Made by a program: the position numbers and the translations under genes. Below, one piece after another: positions 35,850 through 42,419 of a DNA stretch of 53,167 nt. This stretch comes from Dimorphilus gyrociliatus (taxonomy: Eukaryota > Animalia > Annelida). Location of the stretch: positions 1 through 53,167 of the forward strand of contig CAJFCJ010000078.1 of the NCBI GenBank assembly GCA_904063045.1, written 5' to 3'. The first letter of the stretch is position 1. Every line of letters starts with the position of its first letter. The notes beneath the pieces were generated by a model that was not told where the DNA came from, did not search any database, and saw only the letters and a program-made list of their open reading frames with translations.

Positions 35850-37082
35850 ACTTTAACAGGGACTTATGAAGGGCGATTAAATCCTTCTTCCGTCTTTTAT
35901 TCAAAATTTCCAATTTTTGTTGAATAGAGTGCCACAAATGGGACCTGTCGAAAACGGCCATAAATGAAATATTTGAAAGTTAGATTTCAGCCTGGGAAAT
36001 GGTTAGGAGGAATAAGATAACTGTTGATATGTTCTTAGCAGGGTCCCATCTAAGGGTTAGGGGTATTCAAAAAGGTTAGGCAAAAACAAGGGCTGGGTTA
36101 GGGTTAGGGTAAAACCATAGATTTATGGCCGTTTTCTACCACATCCGCCACAAATTATCCTTTTTAGTAAATTGGGGGCCGTCATATGCAAGATTCTTCA
36201 ACATGTGCCATGCATTCTCTATGGGGGAAAGATCTGGGGAGTAAGCTGGCCGAGGTAATACTTTGCACCTTTCAGTCTTAAAATATTTTAGGATAATTTT
36301 GGCTTTGTGGCAAGGAGCATTATCCTGTTGGAAGATGAAACTCTTCCCATATCTTTTTTTCAGGAATGGCATGACCTTTTTTTTCAAAAGAGGCAAGTAC
36401 CATTCCTTTGTGCACTTTTTTTCGATCCTGGAAATGTGCAAGAACCCATCTGGCCGCATACATCCCCAGATCATTACTCCTCCACCACCTATTGGATGCT
36501 TTGTTCTTAGATTTTCTATTTCTGGGTTGAACTGCCATGTTTGGAAATTGTTTGGCCCATCTAAGCTGAATCTACATTCATGAGATATAATTGTTTTGTC
36601 CAAGTCAAATTTATTTTCAAACCAGCCTCTACACATTTCTACTCATCTTAGTCTATTTTTCTTCTTTAGTGGGGGATTTAGAGGGATTTTTTTAAATTTC
36701 CCTCCCATTTCTTTTAGGGCTTTCTGTATGGTCGTCTTTGATACTATTAAGTTGCACTTGGATGCCAACTTTGTACTTGTAACCCATTGTTTTTTTCCTC
36801 CTTCATCTTTTTAATCTCCCTCTTCATGATGATTCTGTCTCTTTTTGAAAGGGAGCTTGGTCTCCCTACACCTCCACTTTTTTGGTATGATGGCTTCAGA
36901 ATGAATTTAACAGAAGATTTTGGAATTTTCAATAATTCTGAAATCTCTCCATAGGATAATCCCTCTTCATGTTTTCTCTTGATTAATGCCTTAATTACTT
37001 GACCATATGCCATATTCAAATTTTATTTTTGATACTGGCCTATTAATATTATTCATGTCTATCATACTGATTGAGTACACTG
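35850..37082 (-). mobile_element. Decayed Tc1/Tc3-like DD34E transposon, interrupted by a MITE
   Basis: HTH/GRP ORF at 36747-37019. Catalytic ORF 36136-36636 has SHECRFSLDGP (first Asp changed to His), QDNAP and SPDLSPIE with 34-residue spacing. Frameshift near 36800 and a TGA near 36643-36645. Putative end CACTG|TA at 37078-37084; the other TIR was not found. Confidence 0.8.
35940..36146 (+). mobile_element. Mutator-like TTAGGG MITE, second subfamily, nested in the Tc1 transposase
   Basis: TIR cores AAAACGGCCATAAAT / ATTTATGGCCGTTTT. Perfect 9-bp TSD GCCACAAAT at 35931-35939 and 36147-36155. GGGCTGGGTTAGGGTTAGGG at 36090-36109. Confidence 0.9.
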
Positions 37083-37996
37083 TAACCAAAAAGGCAATAT
37101 GGAAATTTATAGTTCAAAATATTTTAGTTATCATGCTAATTTTGAAATATTCAATTTTTCTATATAACATAATAGAAACCTAAGAATACTTGTTGCATAT
37201 ATCAAATGTAGCATTACATATTCTGACAACTATTGTTGACAATGTCATTTTCAAGGTTGTTGTTAAAACTTGAATCAATTTTTCCCAGGATTAACTATTT
37301 ACTTGCCAATTGCATCATGGCTTTTTTATGACTAATTTTTGAAAATGAAAGTATATGGAGAATTGGTTTATTTATGAATTATCTACAGGGACTAATAACA
37401 GTGTGAAGAGATGACACAATAACATAAATGATAAAGATTTGAACCCTAACTGGCTAATGCAATATTAGTTCAAACATCATTTATGCTTCATAGTACTCTT
37501 TCTTTGATAGTAAATACTTCGATATTTTTTATCTTGAATTCTTAAATGTTTTTCACTAACACATTCTTAGTATTATACCTGCTTTTCTTTGGTATTAATA
37601 AAAGAAATGGCTAGAATTTCATGAGTAAAGCTTTACCCCTAATGGGTATGATTTCACTCAGGTATGGTTTAACCCCACTATGGCTTCATCTGTTCCCCAC
37701 AAATATCATATTTCAGAATTAATAATATTCCAACTATTACTACAGTATGATAGAAATTTCAAAATTGTGCCAAAGGAATATGTATTAAGTAAATGTGTTC
37801 AATCTAACATTACTGTATAGATTCTACAGTTAGAAATCAGACATCTGAAAATCTTCAGAAATGCATTTCATGAAATAAAAGATGGATTAATAGTAATCTG
37901 AAAAGCTTATGTGGTTATAGATTGAGATTAGGCATTATTAAGACTTTTCAATTGCACCGATACATGAATTATGAAACTTTGGTTGTGTTCTGTCAT

Positions 37997-40900
37997 TCAA
38001 GCGAAAGATCCTTCATAATTGGAGTTACAATGATCAATGTATAAAAGACTGTTACGATTCCAGGCATAAAGTGCTGCTGCACCTTTACTCTCTCTAAGAA
38101 CACTATTAAAGTCCGATTCCCTTACTAAATGTTTAGCCTTTTCAATCTTAGCTGGGTTAATATTTGAAAGGTTGACTTCTCGAATTTTGTACAAAAGACC
38201 TTTTGCAGTATACAATTGAAGATGCTTTTGACAGTTTTCCCAATTATCTAACTCAGACTCATCAACTCCTAAAATTAGAAGCAGTGACTTTATTGCGGCA
38301 TCAACATCAGATGAAGGGTTCAACATTGTACTCAACTCTCCCAAACATCTGGGATCACAATTCAACACTTTTTCATTCAGAATTTCAGTTTTTGATTTTA
38401 TATCCAGACTTCTGCAAACATCATCCACTTCATTACTTCCCAGAATTTCATTCAAAACACTTATCCAATAGTTGGCAGATTGTTGATTTTCTTCAAGAGA
38501 AATAGCTTGAATACTCTCTGCTAGAGTATTACAATCTTTGTTATGAACTTTAAATATATTTTCAATCTGGAAAAATTGAAAATGATTATTCACTTAAAAT
38601 ACATTAGAGGAAATGTAAATGATATATTAATACTGCATTAATGAAAGATGGCAATGGAGGTTCTTCAGATTCATTCAATGATTTATCATTCTTCTTATAA
38701 ATCTAAAGTTGGAAAAAAAATGAACTTTTCTTGTCTATTTTGCTAAACACTTGAATTATTTGTCTCAAACAACAATTTTTAGTTTCTTACTTTAAATTTA
38801 CCAAACCAGTCATATGAGTTTGAACTTGAATTAAAATTTATATACAAATCCAACACTCCTGATTCTTCTCCAGTGTTACCCATAACATTCCATTTATCAT
38901 TAATACAATCAGCATGAAACCATTCTTTATCTGATGATCTAACAACAGCAACTTTTTTTGCATTTGGAATTTTTACTTGAAATTTAACATCTGTGTTGTA
39001 GTATAGTTTGTGAAATGGTTCCATCAATAAACAAGGGTTTTTAATATTGGGAAATTCAAAACTTTCATTGAATCCTTGGCTTACAACAAACACACAACTG
39101 TAGGCTAGACCATAACTGCTTGTTGAGTTGCTCTCTCTTACATAAATATCATAAGTGTAAATACCTGGCATTGGAAATTTGACCATAAACTTAACTTCAG
39201 TTCTGTTATTGATATGAAATTGATATCTATCCAGTTCAGTTTCAATTGCAGATGAACAGGTGTAAAATAAATGACACAAAAATTCACATTCTTTTAATTT
39301 ATAAAATCTAAAATCAATTGATTTGTAGACATGTTGTAAAGGCAAAAAACCTTCTTCTGTCTTTAATTGATGCATCTGAAATTTTTCATATTGTCCAATT
39401 GGGATATTCAATTGTTTAGCCGCAATTTGAATTTGCACTTTTGGATCATTTCTACAAACAATCATAAAGGAACATAAGCCTGAATAATCCCCTTCTTCAC
39501 ATCTCTTCTTAGCATATATGTTTAGAACATATTCTCCCTTTTTAGGTAAAAACACTCTTATACAGGCTCTGTTGTACTCAAAAGTTGTCAGGCAATGCTT
39601 TCTTAATTCTGTCTCCTCCATATCATTACTTAAAAGTTTAAAAGTTATAGAATATTCCTCAGTATTGGCATTAAATTCAATAATTGCATATCCATTTTCA
39701 TCACAGTTCACAATTCCAGTTTGTGGATTAAAATTGGAGAAATTTAGTTTTCTCGTAATATTGTTTTCTCCCATTTTATTATAAATAGCTTTTGGAAAAA
39801 ACAATTTTTGTTTTGGCATTTCTTCGCCTGGTAGGATCTGGTAATTAATTATGTAAGCACACAAGAATTTTGTTGCTGTCCATATAATAAATTGATATTT
39901 TGCAGGAAAAGGAAGCCTCAGCCAAATCACACATCTATCCCTTTTCCTTTCAACAAAAGCAATACAATATGTTTTGATTTGACCATCTTTAGTCACCACC
40001 ATTTCATTCTTATTATCACAAGCTGATCCATTCAACATATATAAATAAAAGTTTATGTCACAATAAAAATTCTTGCTAATACCAAATATGATTTCATTAT
40101 TGGCTTTGTTTGTTTCAATGGTTTGTCTAGGATGAGAAAGAATTGACAAGCCATTGTTAAAAAATGGCATCCGTATTATGGTTGCTTCAAGAAATTCTTG
40201 TTTTGTAAATGAACGAGCTAACAGCTGATTTTTAGGATTGTCAGGGAAAAATTGAAATATGAATTGTTCTGGATTAGAAAGAAAGTATTCCTCTTTAAAT
40301 ACATAAACTCGTTCATCCTTTGAATGTTTGACTTTGTCTTTATTAGATATTAAAGTCCACCCTTCCATATCACTTATTGTATGAAACCATGCCCAATGTG
40401 GATGGCATATGTACCATTTATTAGAAACTTTAACAATAGTCCATTTACAAATGCCTGTTTTATCATTTTCAAAGCTTTTATAAATGCCCCAAACTGTAGC
40501 ACAAGAAAGATTTGCTAGGCTAACAGAAGTATAATATTTTGAATAGTACATTTGATATAAAAGTATTATATTTAGCCCATTCTCACCTGCAAAGTTTTGT
40601 AAAAAGTGCAGTATTTCTGCCAGTTTCTAATATGTTTTGTATTTCATATCCAACTGTTCCAAAAGGTAAATTATTGGTGTCAATGTCTTTTAATTTTGGT
40701 GAAGTAATCCAGCGAAAAATTATTCGAAGTTTTTCCATTTCATCTTTGCAAACTGCTGTTAAATGATCTACTAGATGAGATAAAGAATTTTTCGTAATCA
40801 TTGGTGTTATTGCCTCTAAAGCAATTTTGTCTAACTCTTTAAAACAATAGTTTTTGAGAGCTTCTTCTTTTGTCAATGGAGAAGGGTATGGTTCATCTGT

Positions 40901-41302
40901 GTTTACCTATTATTGTATTTCACAAAAGTGTTATAGGTCTACAACATAAGACAGGTTTTTAACAAATAGAAAGTGAAAGTAAAAATAGAAATCTGAATTT
41001 TTTTAAGTAAAATAAAATATGATGTGACAGAAAACACCCATAAATGTAGTGTTTTCATAAGCTATGTCTTACACAATCATTGGGAAATGATTCATTTAAA
41101 TTGAACTTTGATACTTGACCCCATGGAAATGTTTCCAAAGTATAGAAAATATTATAAAAAATATAGGTCACCTGTTCTCCATAAGAATTAGCCCACTCTC
41201 TATTTGCTATTCTCAATTTGATGTCTGTTGGATAAGGAATTTCAGTATAATCCATTTCGTTTGAAATATGATCACTATTTCTGTTTGTAATTGGCTCTTT
41301 CT
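37997..41302 (-). CDS. KY/hillarin-like transglutaminase-fold protein (catalytic triad apparently lost) with Ig-like repeats and a C-terminal dynein-stalk MTBD-like domain; 5' end unresolved
   Basis: Exons at about 41302-41173, 40907-40588, 40520-38788, 38702-38634 and 38566-37997, joined through GT-AG introns. KY-like motifs KLRIIFRWIT, LFTKLC, EEYFLSNPEQFIFQFFPDNPKNQLL and LPKKGEYVLNIYAK. The last exon has GELSTMLNPSSDVDAAIKSLLLILG...W...VLRESKGAAALYAW. Confidence 0.8.
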
Positions 41303-42419
41303 CTTATGAAGACAGGAGACTGAATAAAAGATTGTGGAAGACACATTCTTACTTTCTTTTCTATTTTTAAAACATTTTTTTTCTCTTGTTTAATTGTTAT
41401 GCAGATTTAAGCTTTTTTAAGTTTTGAATTAGTATTGTAAGTAAAAGTAGTAGCAATTATTCAACCAAAGAGAAATACAACCTACCACAATGTATTAGAA
41501 ATATACAATGCAAAGGGGCTAAATGTTCAAGTTACTCAAAGTTGGAAATAAACACAGATATATCGAGATAAAGAGAAAAGAAAAAATCAGATACAAACAG
41601 CTAGAGACTCATGTCAGCTATAATTGTCTTTCATCTAATATAATCACTAAATCATCATCTAAACAGTTACACTTTTGATTTCTTCTTGAGATGAGTATGA
41701 ACTCATACCATATATGGTGTAGTGGATGGGTACTTCGCCTAAATTTGGCTGTGAGCCAAATTTCCTTTACGTTATTTTATAATTACCTTACGTTATATAT
41801 ATTTTAAACCTAACCATATTTCATTACCCCTTATCATTTTCGATACGTTATTACTTATTATTACTGCTGTATATTTACTAGTAAATATAGTAAATACGTT
41901 AAATCTTTAACGCGTTGTACTGCTCATTCACCGACTACATATGGTATCACCATTGTCATCTGGTTAAACTAGGATATCATTGTTTTTCTCTAATAAAAAA
42001 GTTTGCATGTAATTTTTCAATAAACAAATATAGATATGGCATCCTTGTTTAACAGCTTTTATGGGAAGGTCACTGTAGAGTTTCAATTGCATGCCATATC
42101 AAAGGCAGCAAAATACTGGATCATTTTCAAATTAAAAACTCTGAAAAAATTAAATTAAAATAAATAATTTGTTATTAAAATCTGATAGAGATGTAATAAC
42201 ATCCAATCAAATGACTTTATTCACTAAGGTATTAGTGTAATTATTGTTATTAAACCCTAACCTCACAAACTTCTCTGGCAATATGACATCTTAGAACCCA
42301 TTTTAATATATATAAATATCGATTATCTTTATTTCCATAGATGCAAAGGAACATTTTCAGTTGACCCCATATTTTTTTTTTCAAACTGTTTATCTTCATT
42401 TAAATACTTAATAGTTTTG

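Follow-up and report, generated by a model that had tools for sequence, protein, structure and literature searches.

A KY/hillarin-type gene of the annelid Dimorphilus gyrociliatus with a spliced terminal exon related to the dynein microtubule-binding domain

The stretch analysed here (hereafter the window) comprises 53,167 nucleotides of the genome of the annelid Dimorphilus gyrociliatus (contig CAJFCJ010000078.1). On its minus strand lies a gene in which a scaffold of the KY/hillarin type is joined, through a short linker exon, to a last exon related to the microtubule-binding domain (MTBD) found at the tip of the dynein stalk. The reading that we favour, and rate somewhat above an even chance, is that the whole is one gene whose motor-less, MTBD-like domain acts as a microtubule anchor for the scaffold. 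We describe below the observed exon structure and splicing of the gene, its homology and fold, and the recurrence of the same architecture across animals, and we then weigh what the terminal domain may bind. Searches, folding and alignments were all carried out with single exons.

The elements of the gene, in the order of transcription, are as follows.

41172..41255, minus strand: exon 1 of the public model DgyrCDS14807, 28 codons long, with its ATG at 41255 and a donor GT at 41171, from the public protein sequence mapped on the window.
40587..40906, minus strand: exon 2, N-terminal part of a putative, degenerate transglutaminase-like core, which aligns with Transglut_core homologues (alignment A3).
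38791..40519, minus strand: exon 3, the remainder of this putative core and three Ig-like_KY repeats (PF23265 at 1.8e-35, three stretches); contig 6 of transcript run X1 spans 38791-40438.
38703..38790, minus strand: intron 3, 88 nt, GT-AG; spliced joint at depth 297, retained form at depth 108.5, retention giving ...KFKVRN and a stop.
38634..38702, minus strand: exon 4, an acidic, proline-containing linker of 69 nt and 23 codons, phase 0-0; it forms a separate contig (depth 317.7) whose loose ends match.
38567..38633, minus strand: intron 4, 67 nt, GT-AG; loose ends at 38566 and 38634 fit the opposite exon exactly, and a retained contig has depth 51.8.
38000..38566, minus strand: exon 5, 189 codons, stop at 37997-37999; translation, and an AlphaFold2 model with pLDDT 89.7 and pTM 0.81.
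38363..38437, minus strand: exon 5 residues 44-68, a predicted helix that corresponds to the final turns of the CC1 strand in the dynein stalk; AlphaFold2 model, and family profiles that align dynein from well upstream of the globular domain.
38042..38362, minus strand: exon 5 residues 69-175, the predicted globular MTBD-like core with helices H1-H6; VIA-align, Foldseek and profile E-values.
37782..37996, minus strand: 3' untranslated region, as far as the transcript contigs extend; X1 contig 1 covers 37782-38243, and depth is 0 below 37731.

Exon 3, a KY exon of 577 codons, is 100% identical to the public D. gyrociliatus model DgyrCDS14807. Its open frame terminates in ...GKFK and is followed by GTAAGA, the donor GT lying at 38790-38789; GTATTA directly follows exon 4, and the acceptor, ...TTTTCCAG, stands immediately before exon 5. 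Introns 3 and 4 are both in phase 0, and the fully spliced frame amounts to 923 codons. A preliminary description of this DNA, made from the letters alone, had linked the KY frame through a 69-nt exon to the last exon by phase-0 GT-AG junctions. All of this is present in the sequence, as are the peptide stretches that it quoted from the exon 5 translation, and both junctions appear in transcript contigs; its FK/GTAAGA junction was placed correctly, although the coordinate given for the donor, 38787, was wrong by 3 nt. The public model (P0001; 714 aa) reads through the intron 3 donor, stops after three codons and is without the 212 C-terminal codons. It is thus truncated, both junctions into the last exon having been missed.

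The transcript evidence comes from one public run of unrecorded kind (X1; Logan contigs), which contains 95% of the sampled words and was compared with positions 37600-41500. Because its coverage extends only over 37782-41199 and introns are skipped, it is read as cDNA. One joint omits 38703-38790 (88 nt, GT..AG on the minus strand) at depth 297, and a second, 40519->40587, omits 40520-40586 (67 nt, GT..AG). The contig that ends at 38566 carries 16 more letters, which are the exact reverse complement of 38634-38649 (16/16), while the contig with its start at 38634 has 14 letters in front of it, identical to 38553-38566 (14/14); the junction between exons 4 and 5 is therefore seen from both sides. 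Intron-retaining contigs are shallower, with depths of 108.5 for intron 3 and 51.8 for intron 4 as against about 297-318 for the spliced forms, and it is this minority form, therefore, that corresponds to the short annotated protein.

The same contigs bear on the possibility that the last exon lies on a separate transcript and that the fusion is an artefact of contig assembly. The public annotation does end the gene before the last exon, unspliced contigs exist, and the depth of exon 5 (508-709) exceeds that of exon 3 (376). Yet both junctions are observed, one as a joint and the other through the two exact overhangs, the reading frame is kept across both, and the same fusion within one protein occurs in two other Dimorphilus models and in 14 models of other animals. 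We regard separate transcription as highly improbable; the preliminary description had named it as an outcome that would speak against the fusion, and the X1 contigs instead join the last exon to the KY exons.

Two features were seen at the edges of the X1 coverage. A contig from 41193 upward passes into similar but different sequence and looks like the transcript of a paralogue with a common 5' exon. The contig of the 3' untranslated region carries 31 loose G+C-rich letters beyond 37782, unlike the A+T-rich window, which may stem from an adapter, from chimerism at the contig end or from another splice.

As judged from family profiles and a structural model, the last exon is a true, diverged homologue of the dynein MTBD. 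An exhaustive phmmer search with exon 5 returned 54 representatives at E < 1e-3, including two proteins (P0012 and P0015) that Pfam assigns to the dynein MTBD family PF12777 ('MT') at 5e-26 and 9e-58, and ESM Atlas features give PF12777 clusters for 28 of 30 matches. When the profile of the 55 relatives (alignment A1) was compared with PDB sequences, the best 60 of 79 matches were essentially dynein heavy chains only, over the MTBD, the best at 2.1e-16 and the isolated MTBD constructs at about 1e-13. PF12777 is matched by 14 of the 55 A1 members, and the profile was therefore rebuilt from the 17 KY-linked copies alone (A2). With this second profile, 56 of 57 PDB matches are dyneins, the best (1.1e-11) being an isolated yeast MTBD. 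The dyneins of this genome are likewise detected by the family profile (5e-15 to 1e-5). As a single sequence searched by phmmer against PDB, exon 5 finds yeast dynein MTBDs at E 0.06, beside a chance alkaline phosphatase; this match is not significant alone and serves for residue correspondence only. A word-index protein search with exon 5 produced no match at E up to 0.01. The exon did not retrieve even itself, since it is absent from all annotated proteins of 104-331 aa.

The second line of evidence is the fold. The AlphaFold2 model of exon 5 comprises a CC1-like helix of 25 residues (44-68), helices H1-H6, and a last, short CC2-like helix (161-188) at the protein end. In VIA-align, model residues 44-189 superpose on residues 3271-3413 of mouse dynein (3err_A) with Z 16.2 and an rmsd of 2.2 A over 140 residues. 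Fourteen matches reach Z >= 8, twelve of them dyneins and two of them non-dynein chains of the same fold, and the next match has Z 4.4. The best Foldseek matches are almost all dyneins, the isolated MTBDs giving TM 0.68-0.70 and rmsd 2.5-3.1 A. A structural match to the dynein MTBD, on which the preliminary description had staked its assignment, is thus found both in the model and in the profiles.

Compared with the dynein MTBD itself (mouse cytoplasmic dynein 1 residues 3271-3413, PDB 3ERR/6RZB; yeast 6KJN/6KJO), the last exon has the same predicted six-helix fold with flanking helices and shares the H1 Glu, the Pro and Trp at the starts of H2 and H3, respectively, and the Ser...Trp of H6. 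Unlike dynein, it has no long antiparallel coiled-coil stalk, no AAA+ ring and no linker, and the domain ends the protein; neither AAA nor dynein motor domains were found by Pfam on the exons or in the record of the annotated protein, and no long antiparallel stalk was found. The family also differs from the dynein MTBD in an insertion of 3-4 residues before the H3 Trp, in an invariant basic residue in H4 and in the distribution of charge. The two non-dynein chains, 7JTK chain C (Chlamydomonas radial spoke 1; Z 13.6) and 9YA2 chain L (Toxoplasma intraconoidal microtubule; Z 10.7), resemble the present case in that they belong to microtubule-based assemblies and have no motor; they differ in protein context, and neither is among the sequence-profile matches listed (the best 60 of 79 for A1; all 57 for A2). 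A motor-less MTBD-like fold is therefore not without precedent. The Toxoplasma conoid paper contains no discussion of an MTBD-like fold.

The third line of evidence is the recurrence of the architecture. Sixteen of the 54 relatives are long and carry Ig-like_KY repeats, mostly together with Transglut_core; in these sixteen the MTBD-like domain is C-terminal. Their sources are the following.

Annelids: two further Dimorphilus genes, Helobdella, Owenia.
Molluscs: Pinctada, Haliotis, Argopecten, Pecten, Batillaria, Ruditapes, Sinanodonta, Potamilus.
Others: Macrostomum (flatworm), Branchiostoma (cephalochordate).

Several of these proteins are named 'hillarin-like', 'ltd-1-like' or 'KY' by NCBI. 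The guess in the preliminary description that similar fusions occur in other lophotrochozoans proved right, and the range extends to amphioxus. Other relatives, for example an Ostrea protein, are without a KY part. For Argopecten, an isoform X2 lacking the domain was considered and rejected, since X2 differs only at the N-terminus, and a word-index search with region 953-1141 of the Helobdella protein returned the query alone. Three of the matched proteins merit separate mention. In P0012 (894 aa, JGI) and in P0015 (1150 aa, MMETSP, a protist transcriptome), PF12777 matches four stretches and is the sole Pfam family at E up to 0.01; both therefore have the appearance of motor-less proteins with multiple MTBDs. 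The third, P0048 (Branchiostoma lanceolatum, 1861 aa), has eight Ig-like_KY stretches, the MTBD-like domain at 1708-1844 and, just before the latter, a weak CARD match (1533-1614) below the Pfam cut-off.

Within the Dimorphilus genome (78 Mb), 12 of 17 matches to exon 5 have Ig-like_KY matches 1-3 kb upstream on their own strand. At least 12 loci combine KY and MTBD-like parts, mostly on small contigs (C23, C38, C40, C44, C46, C56, C66 with two, C98, C100, C30), whereas about 15 true dynein stalks, located by a PF12777 scan, lie at other loci. The model DgyrCDS14529 (P0006, 253 aa), which contains the MTBD-like exon only, is probably a split part of another such gene. A fragment at C61:131295-131432 is 87% identical to residues 144-189, and another lies at C40:31426-31557.

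Such an expansion raises the question of whether the present copy is a decaying member of it, still expressed and spliced while its last exon drifts without a specific function. Several of the Dimorphilus loci have in-frame stops or consist of fragments only; the identity of this copy is low (16-26% to public KY-linked relatives, 25-36% to full-length copies in its own genome); and family-typical features have been lost, namely Tyr81 (now Met), Pro-Pro (now Pro-Ser) and the basic residue of H1. By its sequence this copy is indeed a diverged member of its family. Its frame of 189 codons is nevertheless intact, the core residues invariant in the family (E77, P84, L99, W109 and W169) are all kept, the structural model is confident, and the exon is spliced and well covered in the transcript contigs. 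In our opinion decay is unlikely.

The scaffold itself is of a recognizable type. Exon 3 matches PF23265 (Ig-like_KY) in three stretches, and the genome scan places three matches at C78:39100-40200. Exon 2 has no Pfam match of its own, and the annotated protein is on record with PF23265 only; in A3, nevertheless, homologues with Transglut_core (PF01841) align to the N-terminal region throughout its length. When A3 is read against the alignment to the transglutaminase-like chain 9crn_A, this protein has Cys at the catalytic His position and His at the Asp position, and the position that we take, from the C-x-G-Y motif, to be that of the nucleophile Cys is Thr. The Cys-His-Asp triad is thus replaced by Thr/Cys/His, and other aligned invertebrate members are likewise without the Cys and His. 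Given the loss of catalytic residues, the KY part is most likely a pseudo-enzyme scaffold. With the KY (kyphoscoliosis peptidase)/hillarin/LTD-1 family this protein shares the Ig-like_KY repeats, which here follow a putative transglutaminase-like core, and it aligns with the hillarin-like, ltd-1-like and KY proteins of NCBI. It differs from the published description of that family, as far as could be found, in its C-terminal MTBD-like domain. The residues at the triad positions differ too, and neither the Pfam matches of exons 2 and 3 nor the families recorded for the annotated protein include a LIM domain.

Among solved structures, the KY-type N-terminal module, with the conserved stretch that follows it, is closest to FAP246 (PDB 7n6g chain 6E; E 2.8e-17; two matched stretches). 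FAP246 (PDB 7N6G/7SQC) belongs to the C1b projection in the ciliary central apparatus of Chlamydomonas, where it contributes to the structure of a ciliary complex bound to microtubules (PMC6548120). It differs from the present protein in its LRR and EF-hand domains (PMC6548120), and it is not among the matches listed for the MTBD-like profiles.

What the terminal domain binds must be judged from its residues. Dynein contacts tubulin through H1, H3 and H6. The H1 motif of dynein, E-(I/L)-(K/R), is kept in 76% of family members, and most KY-linked cores are net basic (up to +11). Together with the kinship of the N-terminal module to FAP246 of the ciliary central apparatus, these features indirectly favour tubulin binding, and the last-exon domain may bind microtubules. 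The Arg and Lys in H6 of this copy align with yeast dynein. The proposal in the preliminary description, that a motor-less MTBD tethers a KY scaffold to microtubules, stands as to the MTBD homologue, the lack of a motor and the KY protein that carries it, while the tethering itself belongs with this predicted binding. A complex prediction with this genome's alpha-tubulin (L015), a beta-tubulin exon (L022) and exon 5 residues 44-189 gave no answer (score 0.00) and counts neither way.

A number of points weigh against the reading as a microtubule anchor, or against parts of it. PF12777 does not match exon 5 at E up to 1, only two chance-level Pfam matches being obtained, so that the test by this Pfam model that had been proposed for the last exon fails to detect it; PF12777 is also absent from 15 of 15 KY-linked proteins scanned at E up to 0.01 and from every KY-linked locus in the genome scan. 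At the 5' end, the splice between exons 1 and 2 is not seen in X1, where contig 7 runs unspliced through 40907-41171, the annotated intron 1, and the 5' end and start of the model are therefore unconfirmed. In this copy the basic position of H1 is Ser, as against Lys/Arg in 76% of relatives and in the dyneins compared, Pro-Ser stands in place of Pro-Pro, and the net charge is -1 over the core and -4 over the H3 region, the latter being +1 to +4 in this genome's dyneins. The affinity of this diverged copy for microtubules may be weak or altered. Moreover, the microtubule affinity of dynein depends on the register of a long coiled coil, and such a coil is absent here. Two further points concern the whole family: residue 127 in H4 is Lys/Arg in 17 of 17 KY-linked copies (A2) and in 95% of the 55 members of A1, whereas the dyneins compared have no basic residue there; and the H4-H5 region carries a charge of +2 to +9, as opposed to -4 to -5 in this genome's dyneins, with H3 often acidic where theirs is basic. 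The invariant basic position in H4 may signify a different binding face or a different partner.

The last two points are the substance of another explanation, in which the dynein-derived fold has been repurposed and uses a basic H4 surface to bind something other than tubulin, for instance septins, another filament or a domain of its own protein. The reversed pattern of charge would fit such a change, as would residue 126, which is Lys/Arg in 65-70% of relatives. Mouse KY has been linked to filamin C and the Z-disc, and Drosophila hillarin to septins. On the other hand, most members keep the basic residue of H1 and a net basic core, and any basic surface suits the acidic surface of the microtubule. 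We consider repurposing a serious but clearly less probable explanation than anchoring on microtubules.

If the anchor reading is followed, the domain would be passive rather than ATP-regulated and would place the KY scaffold on the tubulin lattice, in the cytoplasm or in cilia; from the sequence, we put the chances of this lattice role at about even. The Ig-like repeats might then hold other cytoskeletal partners at the lattice, for which the chances appear similarly balanced. Retention of intron 3 would yield a shorter protein without the anchor, and splicing may therefore set the ratio of anchored to free scaffold.

In the literature accessible to the searches, no paper was found that describes a dynein MTBD on a KY or hillarin protein, although automatic annotation has given some short mollusc fragments names of the type 'Microtubule-binding stalk of dynein motor domain-containing protein'. 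The domain is thus known and the architecture widespread, and the combination is apparently undescribed. We tentatively suggest, with somewhat less than even confidence, that KY/hillarin scaffolds with a captured dynein MTBD constitute a class of non-motor microtubule-associated proteins of old, at least bilaterian, origin, in which the stalk tip, without stalk or ATPase, would anchor to the lattice by itself. Discussion of the dynein MTBD is normally confined to the motor, where its affinity is set by stalk register. If the suggestion is correct, it would be a clear case of a dynein track-binding module reused outside a motor in animals, and it would explain in molecular terms why hillarin-type proteins localise to the cytoskeleton. 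A widespread MTBD carried without stalk or motor by a pseudo-enzyme scaffold would also provide a natural minimal MTBD for studies of lattice recognition, extend the microtubule-associated proteins of lophotrochozoans and cephalochordates by one class, and supply a testable hypothesis for the function of KY/hillarin proteins. As to annotation, the gene models of Dimorphilus include at least one that is cut short, and others are probably truncated or split as well. PF12777 misses the KY-linked branch, and a dedicated profile would therefore improve the annotation of many proteins now called 'hillarin-like' or 'uncharacterized'.

Two minor observations may be added. Exon 5 has Cys at residues 74 and 112 (window positions about 38345-38347 and 38231-38233); among the 55 relatives, Cys occurs at residue 112 in H3 in 33 and at residue 74 in H1 in 6, all of the latter being Dimorphilus copies. 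About 1 kb downstream of the gene, on the minus strand at 36136-37019, lie open frames of 166 and 90 aa, which resemble the catalytic and DNA-binding parts of a Tc1/mariner-type transposase.

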